This document shows positions 10,614-18,135 of a stretch of 64,000 nucleotides of DNA, piece after piece. A program made the position numbers and the translations under genes. The DNA comes from Mantamonas sphyraenae STR306 (Eukaryota; Protista; CRuMs). The notes under the pieces were generated by a model. The model worked only from the letters and a program-made list of their open reading frames with translations. It searched no databases and was not told the origin of the DNA. The stretch spans positions 186,001 to 250,000 of the forward strand of contig JAPMXV010000017.1 in assembly GCA_026936335.1 (NCBI GenBank), in the 5' to 3' direction. The stretch's first letter is position 1. Every line of letters begins with the position of its first letter.

Positions 10614-10809
10614 TGTTTGTGTGTCGTGTGTTTGTGCTTGAGTGTGTGCGTGGATTGGGGTTTTGTTGGCTGCTCCGTCGTGGCCTCATCTTCATCATCT
10701 GTATTCCTATTTGCAAAACAGCGCGCCGTCGCACGCAATCGTCACACCACGTATATTCGACACACACACATCGAATGAAGTCACGATCAGGTCACAACGG
10801 TGTTAGTTG

Positions 10810-10952
10810 ACGGCTAGGGGGGGGGGTGGGGCGGAAGGGGGCGAATCCGGGCAAATCAAATCCCACAAACTCACATTATGAATGTGTTTGGGTCGTGTGT
10901 TTCGTCCCAATGTGTGTGTGTGTGTGTGTGTGCGATGCAGACGTGGTTGTTC
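10810..10952 (-). ncRNA. Candidate omegaRNA scaffold / element right end
   Basis: Lies immediately 3' of the Fanzor-like stop codon. Contains inverted repeats (cacatt-atg-aatgtg with flanking caaa/tttg; ttggg...cccaa). Positional inference only. Confidence 0.35.
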
Positions 10953-13900
10953 TCAGGTGTTGACCTTCTGCAGGTGATGGGGCCGGTGACCAAGAAGGAT
11001 GTAGCAAAGCCCAACCAGGCCAATGTTGAGGGCACCGTTTGCATCGCGATCAACGCAGCGTCGACGTTTGTCGGTGGTGGCTGGATTGATATTGCTTACA
11101 AGTGACATGGCTGTGCCATTCACCGTGGTTTGGTGTGTGCGAAGAAACGTCCTTTCGGAGCAGATGCACCGCTTGAGCCTTCCTAGTGGGGCGTGTGAGC
11201 CGAGGTGTGGTGCATAATCCATCTCTGCACCACAGTTGGCACACATCTTGGACGTGAAGAACTCGTTGCAGCGCAGGACGATGTGGGTCCGCGCCATGTA
11301 CTCGATGGCCTTTTTGAAACCCCCGCTCTCGCCTCGCCATGACACTGTGCCAACGATGTAGATGACCATCCTGGGTTTCTGATTGTCCCGAGGGCGGGAT
11401 GCACTGGCCATAAGCTGCTGCGTGTGTGCATGCCGTCGCGTCCTGTGCATCTTGCCCACTCGGCCGTCCGGGTCTGCCCCTGCCGCTGTGTGCCTCGCTA
11501 GGCTGTGTGTGTGGTCGTTCATCTTCTGCTCGTGATGTGGCAGGGTCGGGACATTCCACCATCTCCCGATAATGGCGTCCGCCCCTGCGGTCGCAGGCTC
11601 GAGTTGGGCACACAGCGCGTTCGTTTGGTACTTGCCCGGATCAATAAGACACAATTGAATGCGTGTCTCCAGAAGCGTCTTGGTGTCCAGGGTTTCCTGC
11701 TCCGTGAGCGCGGGGCGCAGGCGCAGGGTGTGAAGGTCAACTGCTGCCGGGTCTCCCGACGAGAGCGTGACACCCGCACTCTGCAGGCCATCCAGCACGT
11801 GGCGTCCTCCAAGCAGTTCACCAACGCGATGGTGGCCCAGCAGGTGGCACAGCCGGAGAACCGTGATCAGTTTGTCCTCGGCTTCGGCTTTGTCTTTCAA
11901 TGCCTTCCTGAGAAGAGGGAGAGCGTAGGCAAAGCTTCGTTCACTCGGTTCCACCAGCTCCAAGAGCGAAAACAGAGCTTGCTGGCGGTCCTTTGGGTCG
12001 GCCCAGAACCCCCTCAGCATGGAAATCACTCCTTGTGTGTGCCATCCCTGGGCCTTCGTGACCTTGCCCGCCACGATCATGGTGCCCGTCGTGGTGGCCA
12101 GCTTCCTCGCGGACAAGTTGGCCACCCGAGGGCAGAGCAAGAACAGCATTGCCGGGGCTGCATTGACACGCTGCCGTCTCGCCTCGCCCGACAGGGGATC
12201 GCCAAGGATGTTGTAGCGCGAGAAACGGTCCACTTGCTCGGCAACCAGCGCGGCAAGCGGGTGTGTTTCTTGAAACTGAAACGCCCACTCGATCACAGCG
12301 TTGTTGGCTCCTTCCACCTGCCTGTTGGGGACATCGTGCACCTTCTTGGCCACTTCCTTGTAGTTGTCCCCCAGCAGAGTGGACACGGGCCCGGAGTCGA
12401 GCAAAAGCAGCTGCACGTGCGGAGCAATGCAAACATCGGGACTCATGGATCGCTCCTTCTTTGGAAGGCCCACATTGTGGCCTTGCGCGACCGCACGGGA
12501 GAAGGTATTCCAGTCGGACGCATCATGCGCCTGTGACTTGCGGCCGAAGAAATTGTCGGCGTCGCCGAGTCCAGAAGCTAGCAGCTGCAACCGCAGTTCC
12601 TCAGCTTCACCATGGAAGGTGCTGTCATCGTGTCCGTTGCGACGGCCGAATTGTGTGTTGAGTTTGCGCAAACGTTGTTCAACAGCCACTTCGCCCTGGC
12701 CCAGAGCGTCTGCAATGGTGCGCACAGCGATGTCCTGCGGTACCGTTTGGATGGCAGGGAGCAGAGATTCCAGAGACTTGGACAGCTTGTACCGTGTGAG
12801 CACGCCGTTGACTTCACCTTGGATTTTGGTGGAGGACTCGGCAAGCGCACTCTTGGCCATACTCCACAGAGCCAACTGTTCATCAGTCCACAAGCGCCCC
12901 TCACTGTTGGGAGTGAGATCGAGCAGAACGTGATCGGCATCACCTGGCTCGCGCACGGTCCTCACCACACCCGGGACCGACCATGCTCTTGCCCACCCGT
13001 CGGTCGAGTCACGGATGACAAGGTAGCGATGGCTATCGTGTGCTGAGTTAAGGACTTTGCAAACGCGTTCCATGAAACTCTGCATGCGATTCTCGTGGTC
13101 GTAGAAGTACTCGGCAGTTTGGGGGGCAGCAGCGTGTTTTCGCTTTTTGCTGCGACCGCTGGTGCTTCTGCTGCTGCTGGTTGCCACGTTGCTGCTGCTG
13201 CTGGTTGCCTTGTTGCTGCTGCTGCTGCTGCTGGTTGCCACGTTGCTGCTGCTGCTGGTTGCCTTGTTGCTGCTGCTGCTGCTGCTGGTTGCCACGTTGC
13301 TGCTGCTGCTGGTTGCCTCGATGCTGCTGTTGCTGGCCGCGTTTGCGCTGGCCATACCGCGCTTTGACCTTCGTGGGCCATCGCTGAGGATGTCGTAGGA
13401 CAGGACGCGCTCACCGCGTTGGTGGAAGGCCAGCGCTGCGGCAGCGTACACCGCTCGTTCCACAAGCGCAACCTGTTTTCCGACCTCGACAAGGACACTC
13501 TGCGCGCCATAGTCACCACCTTTCCCACCGCTCAGGTCGACTGTGCGTCTTGAGTCGAATGGCACCACCCCATACGGGTGCACTTTCCCTTTGGGGCCCT
13601 GTGCAGACTCGGCCATCTCGACGAACTTTTCCTCAACCTTGTGTTCAAGGTCCTGGCGCTTGGTTGCGCGCGCGTGCAGTTGCAGATCGTTGGCCAGGCT
13701 GCTGGTTAACTCAGCCCCCAGTTCCAGAGCCTCGGCTTCGCCCTCCTTCAACTGCGTCACCTGCTTCATGGCAATCTCAACGCGTCTCTCGGCCTCGGAC
13801 GCCGCCGCCGCCGTTTGCTCCGTGGATGCACTGTACTTGGACACACCCGCGGCAGCGCAGTTCGTCAGATAACATGCGATGCCGATGAGAACGCCTGCGT

Positions 13901-16511
13901 TCTCCTCGGCACCCTCGACGACCAGGTCTGTGGTGTTGTTGACGCGCACGACGCTGAACCGCGCGTACCGCATGACGTCTTGGTAGAAGTCATCTTCCAG
14001 TGTTGCTCGGAGCCACTCGATTCCATGCATAGGGAACGCACGTTTGTACAGTGTGACGTCACCACGACGGCTTTGGCGGCCAGCTGCAAGCAGCTCATGA
14101 TCCTCTTGCTGCGTCTCCTCCTGGGCCCCCTCCTCGTTCTCGGTCAGGCCATTTTCCTGTGCCTCCGTGCCTTCCTGGTAGTCCAAAGGAGCCGTGACCC
14201 AGTTGCGTGCAAACGGGTTGCTCGTAGCCACTTCCCACCCGCGGACTTTCACCTTCACCTTCTTCCTCCGTTTCCCCTTACCCAAACCTGGCTGCAGCAG
14301 TTGCACGTGTTCGACAGGTACATGAGCACATTTCCCATCTGCAAACTGCACGTTGGACCCATCCTCTTCTGCGATGAACGCCCGTGAGCTGCCGTCCACT
14401 GCCACATATAGTTTCCACCGCTTGGTTGCGCTGTTCAGGTTGCGCACCAGTGCAGCGACCTCATCAGACGTGAACGCTTTTCCAAAGTACGTACGAGCCT
14501 CCATGGTGGAAACCAGGGTCGTGCTGTTGTACCCCATCTCGGAAACGAGGACCCAAAGTTCGTCGTACTGGTCCTGATCCCACTTCTGCGGCACCTCCTC
14601 CCCCTGCCCATTCTCCTGCCCATCCTCCTGCTGCCCAACCACCTCTGACCCGCTCTCCTCCTGCTGCTCAACCTCCTGCAGCCTGTCCTCCTCTGACACG
14701 CTCTCCTCCTGCTGCTCAACCTCCTGCAGCCTGTCCTCCTCTGACACGCTCTCCTCCTGCTGCTCAACCTCCTCTGGCCCACTCTCGTCCAGACCCAACT
14801 CGCGCCTCGCGCGCATAAAACGCGACGTCCACAGAGACATGTCTTCATCCGTTGCACCCTGTTCATGCTCCTCTAGCCATTTGTAGGTACCAGGGTTGCG
14901 CAGGGCCAGCACACGCTTCCAATGCTCACGTGCAGGCTGCCTGGCATCCTGCGGTTCCAAAAAGTCACGTCCAAGTTCTTCCACAACCCCAGCCTCTTGA
15001 GCTTTACGAGCGAGTTCTTCCACAACCCCAGCCTCTTGAGCTTTACGAGCAAATTCTTCCACGAATTCTTCCACAAGCCCAGCCTCTTGAGCTTTCCGTG
15101 CGAGTGCCAAGGGGACACGCAGCCATGTGGTGCTAATATCACCACGTCCAGCCAACAGTGCCACCTGGGCAGCCCTTTTCCGCTCCGCAACGTTCACAGC
15201 ACACCACGCAAATGTGGTTGGATGGACGACGTAGAGGGTTCTGCACGTTTGAGGTGCACAAAAGAAGAAGTCCGAATCCACTGCGACAACAACGAAAGTG
15301 CTCTCTGTCGTCTGAAAAGATTCGACGATGGCATCATCCGCAGATTTTCCTTCCTGAGACACAATCACGGTGTTGTCGCTGTCGTTGAAGCGTTGCATCA
15401 GTGCATCCGTGAGCTGCACATACGCCTCTTCCTTCGCCAGGGGTTTCTCAGGTTTCTGAGTGTGTGCGTGTGTGCGTGTGTGCGTGTCAGTTTTGCGGAT
15501 TGTCCAAATCCCCAATATTGCCTCCACCCCCATACCTCCAGGTCTTTTGCAACACTCTGGGCCATTTTTCGCACAGTGTGCATCATGTGTGCAGGTCGCT
15601 TGGGGTCATTGGGGTCGAACAGGGCCCTGTGCCTGTCTACGTGGACATGCAGCGTTGTGTCGATGTTGGATGGCAAGGAAGTCAGCAAATCCTCGACGTC
15701 GTCGCAGATCGTTGCGCAGGCCTTCTCAAGTGCTTCACTGGTTGGAGGTTTGCCTCCGTGGCCATGTAGGCCGGCAGGATAGTCTGGGCAGTGAGAAAGC
15801 GGTGTGTAAGCGATGCGCGCGACGTCTTCGATCCCCCCCCCCCCCCACATGTCCCAGATGCCTGGGGCGCAAATGAGACTTCAGAGGTGCATGCTTGGGC
15901 GTGCTACCCGTGTCTCTGCACATTCACAGGCATCATACTCGACATCCATATGCACACGTCACAACGTTCTTCGCGCGCAGCAACCCAAAAACACCACACT
16001 TACACTGGGGTCCGAGATCCAATGCCACAAGCATGCGACCGTCGTAGCTACTGGTTCCAATGTCGTCACTCTCGGCCATGGCGTGGTCACTTGTGGCGGC
16101 ATGGGCATGAGCCTGGATTTGCTTCAGTGCGTCGCCAACACTCTCTGCGGAGGCGCTGTGTGACTGGGCGATCACCTGATCCCTAATGCCGGTCTTTGGT
16201 TGGCTGTACCTCTTGCGTGGGTACACCTGGCCCCATGATCCAAGTTCGGCACGCTGGTGATCAAAGATGTCCAGATCCAGCACCGCAAATTTGTTTCCAA
16301 GCCGATTCACTGGCAAATCGTGCAGCGTAGCACTGGACACGTGTGGCAGTGATAAAACACTGCGTTTTGCCGACTCAGCGACCTTCCTCTCATTCTGGGT
16401 GAGCCTGCCCATTTTTCGGTGTCTTGCCTCTTCCAGCGCAACGGCTTGGTCATCCACAAACATCCGGTGAGGATCATCAACATCGCCAGTCAACGTGTGG
16501 GCTGGTCGCAT
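10953..16511 (-). CDS. About 1750-aa PIN (FEN1/XPG-like) + Fanzor/TnpB RuvC-zinc-finger fusion; exons about 16511-16004, 15783-15536 and 15455-10953
   Basis: C-terminus: LCLIDPG (D 11640-42), IYIVG, RCNEFFTSKMCANCG (E 11262-64), KRCIC, VDRDANGALNI (D 11043-45). N-terminus: LVALDLG, HVHVDRH...K...HTVRK, KSADDAI, VVAVDSDFF, ALLAGRGD. Both introns are GT-AG and frame-preserving (phase 1 and phase 0). Confidence 0.85.
13160..13335. repeat. About 54-bp tandem repeats encoding SSSSNVATSSSSSSNKAT inside the Fanzor-like ORF
   Basis: Repeated ctgctggttgccacgttgctgctgctgctggttgcc units. Confidence 0.85.
14640..15100. repeat. 48-bp (EVEQQEESVSEEDRLQ) and 39-bp (ARKAQEAGVVEEL) coding tandem repeats inside the Fanzor-like ORF
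   Basis: Direct repeats visible at 14650-14775 and 14975-15095. Confidence 0.85.
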
Positions 16512-16893
16512 GACCACATGAGCGTCTCAATTGAGTGCGTGAGGCAAACCAAATTCACGGCAAAGTCTGCACTGTGGCATCGGCACACTCCACGTCCTGT
16601 TCGCTCCACGAGTGTGACTGGACAAGCGCCGTGTACTCGTCAAGATGATGATAGCTTGTCTTGACCTACTGTCATCATGGGATTCTCAATGTATTCGATG
16701 CTTTGGAGGGCGCAAAGGGCGGGGAGCAGCCACATCCGCTATTCGTGGACAGGAACGGGCCATGGGGATGGGAATACAGGATTGAATCATTGATCACCAG
16801 AGAAAATGGCCTTCTTGTGAATCTCACTCGCAAAGCACCGGCGTCGCAATGAAACGGGCGTCGCAGCAAAAAGGTTCGCTCAAACGAAAATCC

Positions 16894-18135
16894 CTATCTG
16901 TATGGTGCGTTTGCAGCTGCACTCGACTTTTCGCTGCGTCGGTCGTACTGGTCATCGTACGACTTGCCGCTGCCGTAGTCACGATCCCGTGGATCGTAGC
17001 TCGGTTCGTCGCGGGCACTGCTGCTGCTGCTGCTGCGATCATAGTCGCGGTCACGCGGATCGTAGCTGGGTTCCCGACGATCGTAGTCACGGTCTCGTGG
17101 GTCGTAGCTGTCCCTGCGATCGTAGCTGTCGCGGCGATCGTAGCCACGGTCGTAGTCGCCGCGTCGGTCGTAGTCACGTCGATCGTAGCCACGGTCGTAG
17201 TCACGACGGTCATAGTCACGACGGTCATAGTCACGTCGGTCATAATCACGTCGGTCGTAGTCACGTCGGTCGTAGCCACGGTCGTAGCCGCCGCCGTAGC
17301 CACGGTCGTAGCCACGATCACGATCGTATCGTCGTCGTCCACCGCCGCCGCCGCCGTTGCGGTAGCGTGCCTTTTCCGCCACACCGCCACCCAAGTACTG
17401 GCCTGGGGTCGGTGAGCGAGGGCGTGTGCGCTTGGCCTTCTGGATGACCAGCGTGCGGCCGTCCCAGTCGGCTCCGTCCAACGCGCGAATCGCTGCGTTG
17501 GCCTCCTCGTCCGTCTCAAACATAACGAACGCAAAGCCACGCGGGCGTCCCGAGCGAGGTTCCACCACCACACTCGCCTTGACAATCTGTGGCGTGCCAC
17601 CCCTGCGTGTCAGTTATTGCTCCACCTCTTTCTTCTGCCCCGGTTGCAGCTCCTTTGCCAGTTGGAGGGAAAAAATGCGCGGTGGAACCGGCCAAAAGCT
17701 TACCCTGCCAAACTCCTCAAACTTGGCGTACAGGTCTGCGTCGCGGTGGTGCTGAGACACACCGGACACATACAGGTTGCTGCCTTCTCCCAGCTCCTTT
17801 TCGTTGAGCTTGGTGCGGTCGGTGGCCCCCGAGCGGCCGTTGTCGTTGTCGCCATCCGCTCCTCCTCGGCCGCCGCTGACATCCTCCGCCTGGGTGTCGC
17901 TGTTGCCCACCAGATCGTCCCCGCTGCCACTGCTGTTGTTCCCTGCCTCCCTGTGTCGGTTGTCCTCGTCGTCATCCTCCTCTGCGTTGTTGCTCGTGTC
18001 CACCTCGGCCTGCTGGGCCTGCGTCTGCTCAGCTTCCGTCGTCGTCGTCGTCTCCTCCTGCGTCGTTTCTTCCGGCTGTGAAGTCTGCGGCTCCTCCGTT
18101 GCTGCGTCGCTCTGTGAATGTGTGGTCCGTTGCAT
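16894..18135 (-). CDS. TRA2/SR45a-like RRM splicing factor; intron 17587-17703
   Basis: RNP2 NLYVSGV, RNP1 RGFAFVMF, TRA2-family linker RTRPRSPTPGQYLG and a YDRRD repeat tail. Confidence 0.85.

Follow-up and report, generated by a model that had tools for sequence, protein, structure and literature searches.

To our knowledge, no RNA-guided DNA nucleases other than Fanzors have been described in eukaryotes. The gene considered here lies on a transposon copy in a stretch of 64,000 nucleotides (nt) from the protist Mantamonas sphyraenae STR306 (GenBank assembly GCA_026936335.1, contig JAPMXV010000017.1, positions 186,001 to 250,000 of the forward strand); this whole stretch is referred to as the window, and positions are given within it. 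The gene is predicted to encode a protein of ~1750 amino acids (aa) that combines a Fanzor1-type nuclease with a FEN-type 5'-nuclease fold. Its closest described relatives are the Fanzor1 proteins, which include SpuFz1 (8GKH), PpFz (9CF0) and the Fanzor1c proteins, for which association with Mariner/Tc1 elements and conserved non-coding flanks have been described (PMC10530073). As in those proteins, a Gly occupies the RuvC-II position, a Glu precedes a T-S/T-K motif, RuvC-III has the RDxNAA motif, and the predicted model matches over its whole length. The gene also resembles Fanzor1 in being carried by a eukaryotic DNA transposon, in having conserved non-coding sequence 3' of the open reading frame (ORF) and spliceosomal introns, and in encoding patches that resemble nuclear localisation signals (NLS). 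In contrast, known Fanzor1 proteins are ~550-900 aa long, whereas the window protein has ~1000 additional N-terminal residues, which include the FEN-type domain and a middle region of ~550 aa, and it is too diverged to be linked to any other Fanzor by word-based or phmmer searches.

With FEN1, EXO1, XPG and GEN1, and with T5 FEN and T4 RNase H, the N-terminal domain shares a predicted PIN-like core and H3TH motif and a collinear set of acidic residues (D, D, (E)xE/D, DxD, D). Unlike FEN1/EXO1-type enzymes, it matches none of the Pfam families XPG_N, XPG_I and 5_3_exonuc, has ~155 extra residues ahead of the first FEN strand and a Ser in place of the first Glu, and is joined to a putatively RNA-guided nuclease instead of tails that interact with PCNA or repair factors. 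An RNA-guided cutter and an end-processing nuclease have been placed in one polypeptide by engineering, with T5 exonuclease, EXO1 or TREX2 fused to Cas9 or Cas12 in order to alter repair outcomes (in part PMC13370227). The window protein has the same combination but is natural, transposon-borne and old enough for its family to have diverged to ~20% identity, and any effect on repair is putative. TnpB-type nucleases are known to travel with IS630/Tc1-type DDE transposases in bacteria and giant viruses (PMC10691335), as members of the present family do; however, those TnpB proteins are of ordinary size and have no extra nuclease, and the window copy is without any transposase. No description of a natural fusion between a Fanzor and a FEN-type nuclease was found in full-text literature searches or in survey papers on Fanzor and TnpB; relative to the literature searched, a Fanzor1 with an added enzymatic domain of this kind is a new pairing.

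The C-terminal module is of the Fanzor1 type

A single ORF of 1526 aa runs uninterrupted on the minus strand (10953..15533, program-made ORF list). Modelling and alignment show its last 720 aa to be a complete Fanzor1-type module, in which the rearranged RuvC site and the zinc ribbon are intact (Table 1). The RuvC-I Asp, the Gly in place of the RuvC-II Glu, the relocated Glu, three zinc-finger Cys and the RuvC-III Arg-Asp are all invariant in an alignment of 13 paralogs. The relocated Glu stands four residues ahead of the T-S-K motif of the zinc ribbon, and the (C/H)xxC...CxC residues of the ribbon are conserved among paralogs. A first-pass annotation, made from the letters alone, had already read these RuvC and zinc-finger motifs at the C-terminus, and each of them is found in the ORF translation.

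The only Pfam match in the ORF is Cas12f1-like_TNB (PF07282; E 1.9e-4, 22 bits). On its own the window copy thus scores below the cut-off of 26.3 bits, but it reaches 28.7 bits together with its frame neighbours; a close paralog on contig C22 scores 26.9, and other giant or ordinary-size Fanzor-like ORFs of the genome score 27-52 bits. When a profile of the last 460 aa of the paralogs was compared with the sequences of the Protein Data Bank (PDB), one match was obtained, to the mimivirus Fanzor2 9b0l (ApmFz2; E 1.8e-4). The invariant Glu of the family pairs in that profile alignment with residue 467 of 9b0l, and E467A is the catalytically dead control mutant of mimivirus Fanzor2 (PMC10530073).

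When the last 720 aa were modelled with AlphaFold2, the mean predicted local distance difference test (pLDDT) score was 71.7. The top six PDB matches of this model in Foldseek were Fanzor1 proteins of Parasitella (PpFz) and Spizellomyces (SpuFz), aligned over the whole length, with marginal E-values (1e-3 to 5e-3). On re-scoring of the best Foldseek matches with VIA, all 50 matches listed were Cas12, Fanzor or TnpB structures (Z 8-11.3), with alignments that cover ~200 residues of the RuvC lobe and fall within model residues 330-720. Simpler comparisons gave no significant match, whether by phmmer with the whole ORF against PDB sequences or by word-indexed protein searches, for which the queries were ORF residues 1100-1526 and, separately, just the C-terminal 460 aa; NCBIfam models did not match the ORF either. 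The assignment to Fanzor1 is considered sound.

The N-terminal region is predicted to have a FEN-type fold

The N-terminal ~450 aa of the spliced protein are predicted to adopt a 5'-nuclease fold of the FEN1/EXO1/T5 type, with a PIN-like core and an H3TH motif, the likeness to FEN/XPG being one of predicted fold only. Acidic motifs in FEN/XPG order, followed by GRGD, had been pointed out in the first-pass annotation and lie where it placed them. These five motifs are collinear in all paralogs, and since the same order recurs down to ~20% identity, they reflect more than chance. The most distant clade (L032-L040, ~20% identical) has the canonical FEN signature EAEQ...DSD.

Because its frame runs through both introns, the paralog L026 was used to predict the N-terminal fold (L026:5430-6641, a continuous frame); the model is therefore one of a paralog and not of the window protein, which contributed rows to the alignment. 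That alignment held 17 paralog rows and left out the exon-1 peptides, which MAFFT had misplaced. Mean pLDDT was 69.5, and 80-94 in the core. Foldseek matched the model to FEN1, T5 FEN and EXO1 (E 2e-4 to 7e-4, probability 0.87-1.0), and further to T4 RNase H, a plastid exonuclease, Rad2/XPG, Xrn1/2, ExoIX and the Taq 5' nuclease, and the first 50 matches contained hardly anything else. A VIA-wide search of 48,161 chains, independent of Foldseek, placed members of the FEN superfamily in all of the top 17 positions (Z 6.3-9.8 over 190-276 residues), including EXO1 (9.8), Xrn1 (9.2), T5 (8.1), T4 RNase H (7.9), FEN1 (7.7), GEN1 (7.4) and XPG (7.2). The next chain had a Z of 5.9, and unrelated Rossmann-like folds began there. 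An ESM-atlas fold search with the model led to 5_3_exonuc_N clusters, and language-model features of residues 27-330 of the window copy itself gave weak leads (all < 0.9) to XPG_I, Pox_G5, the herpesvirus vhs family and 5_3_exonuc_N.

A Pfam XPG_I scan of the genome found only five ordinary host genes (L041-L045), which include FEN1-like, EXO1-like and Asteroid-like genes, and none of the giant ORFs. None of the five is close enough to be an evident donor of the Fanzor-fused domain.

A three-exon gene model

The host genome (25 Mb in 78 contigs, ~59% G+C) has spliceosomal introns, and removal of two predicted introns would join the main ORF to two upstream exons, which would contribute the first half of the FEN-like domain. 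The resulting protein would have 1752 aa (169 codons, one junction codon, 82 codons and 1500 codons), which agrees with the ~1750 aa proposed in the first-pass annotation; its two introns likewise hold at the positions and phases given there, and both have canonical splice-site ends. A tandem repeat lies within intron 2 at 15460-15487 (Tandem Repeats Finder).

The upstream exons are conserved in paralogs as peptides. The exon-1 peptide is 63% identical to L021, 59% to L022 and 30-39% to five further paralogs, and the exon-2 peptide is 67%, 59% and 26-36% identical to L021, L022 and five more paralogs, respectively; the two keep their order and relative location ahead of the main ORF. Seven copies (the window, L021, L022, L024, L029, L030 and L031) share intron 1 in both position and phase, and in each of them two codons separate FEN motif 1 from T|GTRAG. 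The site and phase of this predicted intron have thus been kept even though the proteins of these copies have strongly diverged. In several paralogs the exon-2-like sequence is joined in frame with exon 3. In L024 the main ORF continues the frame of exon 2, and L026 has the three parts together in a single frame of 2087 aa (L026:792-7052, contig C43), in which both introns are read through in phase. Assignment of the upstream exons to a different gene was considered and rejected, on account of the peptides and intron 1 being kept in place in paralogs and of the in-frame exon-2-like sequence of L024 and L026. The fusion itself is independent of the splicing model, because the 1526-aa ORF alone includes the entire Fanzor module as well as the second half of the FEN-like domain.

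The fusion forms a multi-copy family under purifying selection

A C-terminal query matched the genome at 36 places, the majority of which lie within open frames of 1437-2252 aa. The N-terminal profile identified 26 loci, every one of which (26/26) has a C-terminal match 3.5-5.5 kb away on the same strand. The 25-Mb genome therefore holds at least 26 FEN-Fanzor loci. A search for co-occurrence of PIN and RuvC domains, which the first-pass annotation had suggested, thus recovers the pairing many times over within this genome. Its description of the architecture as non-canonical is retained as regards the roughly 1000 extra N-terminal residues with their FEN domain, but the architecture is not singular, since it belongs to a transposon-borne family. 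A single-protein scan of metagenome contigs found no relative.

Ratios of non-synonymous to synonymous substitution (dN/dS) in 13 paralog pairs were 0.05-0.5 in the FEN, middle and Fanzor parts, with dS saturated in distant pairs; values for the FEN-like domain were 0.08-0.26. All three parts of the protein are therefore kept by purifying selection.

The gene is carried by a non-autonomous transposon copy

Recent copies of the family are 92-97% identical and form sharply bounded units of 5.4-8.4 kb. The unit in the window extends from ~10705 to ~16895 and has an 8-bp direct repeat on both sides; its DNA similarity to L021 and L022 runs from ~10704 to ~16853. The two ends of the elements have in common an imperfect inverted motif of ~15-20 bp, which includes a GC-rich block; its left copy, at ~16880-16896 in the window, is found in other subfamilies as well. 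The region 16512..16895 probably holds the promoter, the 5' untranslated region (UTR) and the left terminal repeat.

Two subfamilies encode a transposase of 379-415 aa upstream of the giant gene and on the same strand (L024:6981-8117 and L029:7640-8884), with DDE_3 (E 1e-25), PAX and HTH_Tnp_IS630 matches. A transposase gene is absent from the window unit (10705-16895), and this copy is therefore non-autonomous. The transposase regions of the two subfamilies (L024:6938-8068 and L029:7552-8682) share a segment of 1135 bp that is 95% identical, whereas their giant Fanzor genes have no DNA similarity and each reach only 30-43% identity with the window copy in the Fanzor module. The shared segment is no longer than the transposase ORF, which suggests that the transposase module was recently exchanged, or converted, between old Fanzor elements.

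The 8-bp repeat is a possible target-site duplication. If the 3' tail is a guide RNA, the right-hand repeat would also supply the first bases of the guide. Flanking direct repeats vary among the copies compared (the window copy and the element ends in L024-L038), from 2 bp (often TA) to 8 bp in the window and 9-13 bp in L025 and L028. Such a range would not be expected of one transposase that makes duplications of a fixed length. The spread could reflect microhomology- or repair-mediated insertion, or ends misplaced for want of empty sites.

The 3' tail is a candidate guide-RNA scaffold

The tail of 252 nt, from the stop codon to the right end, is 95% identical to L021 and 88% to L022 (95% and 91%, respectively, in its first 100 nt). 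The adjacent 2.1 kb of coding sequence is 77% and 70% identical, with a dS of 0.76-1.5, and all similarity is lost abruptly after ~10704. Fanzor guide RNAs have been described with this pattern, a tail more conserved than the coding sequence, and the present tail is therefore a good candidate for a guide scaffold. The last ~25 nt are a motif common to all subfamilies and double as the terminal repeat. Rfam had no match over the element, and an alignment of the tails of all subfamilies was too poor to yield a structure. The tail also contains (CA)n and (TG)n runs with a predicted pairing of ~16 bp, both of which are kept in L021 and L022.

Proposed mechanism and alternative explanations

The explanation that we favour, and regard as moderately probable as a whole, is that the window holds a non-autonomous transposon copy with a three-exon gene for a Fanzor1 of ~1750 aa fused to a FEN-type nuclease, which would first cut and then resect. 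Transcription of the tail would yield an omega-type guide RNA with a guide part that extends into the flank, and the RuvC domain would cut guide-matched DNA. At the break or R-loop, the tethered FEN-like nuclease would next strip 5' strands or flaps, leaving 3' tails that would steer repair to homologous recombination with the element-bearing copy, and such repair would secure retention or spread of the element.

Several observations weigh against this explanation. The FEN-like domain was recognised through the predicted structure of a paralog, with the shallow alignment and mean pLDDT given above, and all sequence-profile methods failed to find it. Neither the exons of the window copy nor nine ORFs from paralogs had a FEN match in Pfam and NCBIfam (XPG_N, XPG_I, 5_3_exonuc_N); the N-terminal paralog profile had no significant match among PDB sequences, and as a hidden Markov model it found no relative outside the genome among 1.84 billion representative proteins. 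In hhalign, the family profile was aligned to the five host XPG genes with G-x-S-A-D...D-S-D paired with P-x-E-A-E-A-Q...D-x-D, at a probability of 0.2%. The fold searches suggested in the first-pass annotation returned the expected superfamilies for both ends of the protein, FEN for the L026 model and Fanzor/TnpB for the C-terminal model, but the sequence profiles stayed blank for the former. TM-scores in Foldseek were only 0.3-0.5, and the resemblance might be an artefact of structure prediction and motif reading in a region with some other fold, or with no defined fold. This appears extremely unlikely. Two independent structure searches and the atlas search are topped by the FEN superfamily only, with a clear gap after it; the hhalign pairing, insignificant as it is, still brings SAD...DSD together with EAEAQ...D.D; and the five motifs are collinear, with EAEQ...DSD in distant paralogs.

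A second difficulty lies in the active site. The catalytic carboxylates of human FEN1 are D34, D86, E158, E160, D179, D181 and D233. By motif order and the hhalign pairing, and not by three-dimensional superposition, the window copy has D, D, S-x-D, D-x-D and D, that is, six of the seven, with Ser at the equivalent of E158. The FEN-order acidic set reported in the first-pass annotation is thus nearly complete, with the first Glu of EAE replaced in the clade of the window copy: by Ser in the window, L021, L024, L026 and L029-L031, and by Pro in L022. The second acidic position of SADD also varies, being SADA in L024 and L026. Because of the Ser, 5'-nuclease activity may be weakened or lost in this clade. 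The domain could accordingly be a pseudo-nuclease that binds DNA structures or flaps, for example to keep a displaced strand in place or to bring the protein to breaks or forks, and the purifying selection on it (dN/dS 0.08-0.26) would fit such a non-catalytic role equally well. We consider a pseudo-nuclease unlikely, as the remaining six carboxylate positions include the invariant DSD pair and the H3TH Asp, and the Ser is itself conserved and not random. Sister clades also keep EAE, and the ancestral domain was therefore probably active.

The fold scores, moreover, do not separate DNA enzymes (EXO1, FEN1) from RNA enzymes (Xrn1). Xrn1/Rat1 chains reached a Z of 9.2, 9.0, 8.9 and 7.7 in the VIA-wide search, compared with 9.8 for EXO1, the virion host shutoff family is among the language-model leads, and an omega RNA within the 3' end of a messenger RNA needs 5' processing. 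The FEN-like domain might on these grounds act on RNA, in 5' maturation or trimming of the guide or in transcript decay, like Xrn1/Rat1 or herpesvirus vhs. Such a role seems decidedly improbable: the matches cover the shared FEN core and not the Xrn1-specific extensions, and the RuvC domains of TnpB and Cas12 are known to process their own guides with no extra nuclease.

Other difficulties concern the tail. It folds no more stably than shuffled sequences (z -0.7), no covariation was seen in the consensus fold of three close copies, and part of its conservation may be due to a transposase-binding terminal repeat. If the tail were terminal repeat and 3' UTR only, the protein would no longer be RNA-guided but a Fanzor-derived nuclease or repair factor, in line with the absence of a significant fold, covariation or Rfam match and with the last ~25 nt, which every subfamily has and which recur in mirrored form at the left ends, as repeats bound by a transposase would be expected to do. 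A guide-free protein is nonetheless very improbable, in that conservation spans all 252 nt and not the terminal 25 alone, the family has an intact, invariant RuvC site and zinc ribbon, and the C-terminal model fits whole Fanzor1 structures, including their RNA-binding lobes.

Finally, the splicing on which the three-exon model depends is predicted, its backing being conservation among paralogs, and the resection-for-homing step is a proposed one, as are the R-loop processing and guide maturation put forward in the first-pass annotation. A more specific proposal builds on the resection step. The guide would direct RuvC to element-free sites, the tethered EXO1/FEN-like nuclease would resect the 5' strands at once, and homologous repair from the element-bearing copy would be forced on a eukaryotic cell that might otherwise rejoin the ends. 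Such a cut-and-resect homing device is possible but rather doubtful. If true, a transposon would here encode a self-contained system that resembles a gene drive, and the design of Cas-exonuclease fusions would have been reached by evolution before it was reached in the laboratory.

Under the favoured explanation, a large family under selection that pairs a Fanzor with a putative 5'-end-processing nuclease points to events after the cut. The role of the nuclease in retaining a transposon through homologous repair becomes directly testable by comparing RuvC-dead with FEN-dead mutants, and the fusion is a natural model for building editors with which repair is biased towards templated outcomes or defined deletions.

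Other features of the locus and of the genome

Feature coordinates are collected in Table 1.

Table 1. Features of the FEN-Fanzor element in the window, listed in the direction of transcription
Feature	Position	Strand	Remarks
Left 8-bp direct repeat	16896..16903	minus	identical to 10697-10704
5' non-coding region	16512..16895	minus	similarity to L021/L022 up to ~16853
Exon 1	16004..16511	minus	169 codons + 1 base; conserved N-terminal region; FEN motif 1 just 5' of the splice site
FEN motif 1, LVALDLG	16031-16011	minus	exon 1
Intron 1 (predicted)	15784..16003	minus	phase 1, GTAAGT...CAG; sequence
Exon 2	15536..15783	minus	82 codons + 2 bases; FEN motif 2 (VHVDRH) and conserved Lys/His
FEN motif 2, VHVDRH	15646-15629	minus	exon 2
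Intron 2 (predicted)	15456..15535	minus	phase 0, GTATGG...CAG; (CA)n-like tract inside; sequence
Exon 3	10953..15455	minus	1500 codons + stop; second half of FEN-like domain through end of Fanzor module, one frame
FEN/XPG-like domain, exon-3 part	14770..15455	minus	paralog alignment; predicted fold of L026; language-model leads; helices after GRGD
SADD, in place of EAE	15344-15333	minus	exon 3
VDSD	15281-15270	minus	exon 3
GRGD, H3TH Asp	15149-15138	minus	exon 3
Middle region, ~550 aa, basic NLS-like patches	13116..14769	minus	aligned across paralogs
In-frame tandem-repeat expansions	13158-13336, 14616-14773, 14972-15062	minus	Tandem Repeats Finder
Fanzor1-type module, 720 aa	10956..13115	minus	REC/WED-like helices, then RuvC and TNB zinc ribbon; AlphaFold2 model, Foldseek, VIA
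RuvC catalytic set	11043..11642	minus	invariant in 13-paralog alignment
RuvC-I Asp 1298 (LIDPG)	11642-11640	minus	ORF numbering
Gly in place of canonical RuvC-II Glu (IYIVG)	11351-11349	minus	
Relocated Glu 1424 (NEFFTSK)	11264-11262	minus	
Zinc-finger Cys (CxxC...CxC)	11234-11232, 11168-11166, 11162-11160	minus	
RuvC-III Asp 1497 (RDANGALNI)	11045-11043	minus	
3' non-coding tail	10705..10952	minus	candidate omega/guide-RNA scaffold; also holds terminal repeat
Right 8-bp direct repeat	10697..10704	minus	sequence

Fanzor-like genes of other kinds are also present in the genome. Four ORFs of ordinary size (L011-L014; C44:207917-211102, C52:434703-437885, C58:22624-25806 and C6:53252-56449) are open frames of 633-849 aa with TNB scores of up to 52 bits, and one of them lies just upstream of the giant element L029. 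A second giant family (L016-L020 and ~20 further places) consists of ORFs of ~1730-1980 aa with TNB zinc ribbons, many copies of which are near-identical. The FEN profile had no match in this second family, and a UCH scan found no deubiquitinase-domain match beside the listed TNB ORFs of ~1850 aa. The FEN-Fanzor fusion shows that Fanzors can accrete whole enzymatic domains, and the genome appears to hold further giant Fanzor families.

The middle region of the window protein aligns across paralogs with a dN/dS of ~0.3, and has neither a Pfam match nor an ESM-atlas feature match. Three tandem-repeat expansions occur in the giant ORF; their units measure 54, 48 and 39 nt and are repeated 2.3-3.3 times at 92-96% identity. 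The acidic and ARKAQEAG-type repeats have no counterpart in the close paralogs L021 and L022 and are therefore recent.

The element sits precisely on the stop codon of an upstream gene for an RNA-binding protein (ORF 16894..17571, minus strand; sites 16894-16903 and 10695-10704). The 8-bp repeat carries the last two codons of that gene. The present TAG stop is formed by the last T of the repeat and the first two bases of the element, and the presumed original TGA follows the right-hand repeat. The insertion therefore leaves the C-terminus of the host RNA-binding protein as it was.

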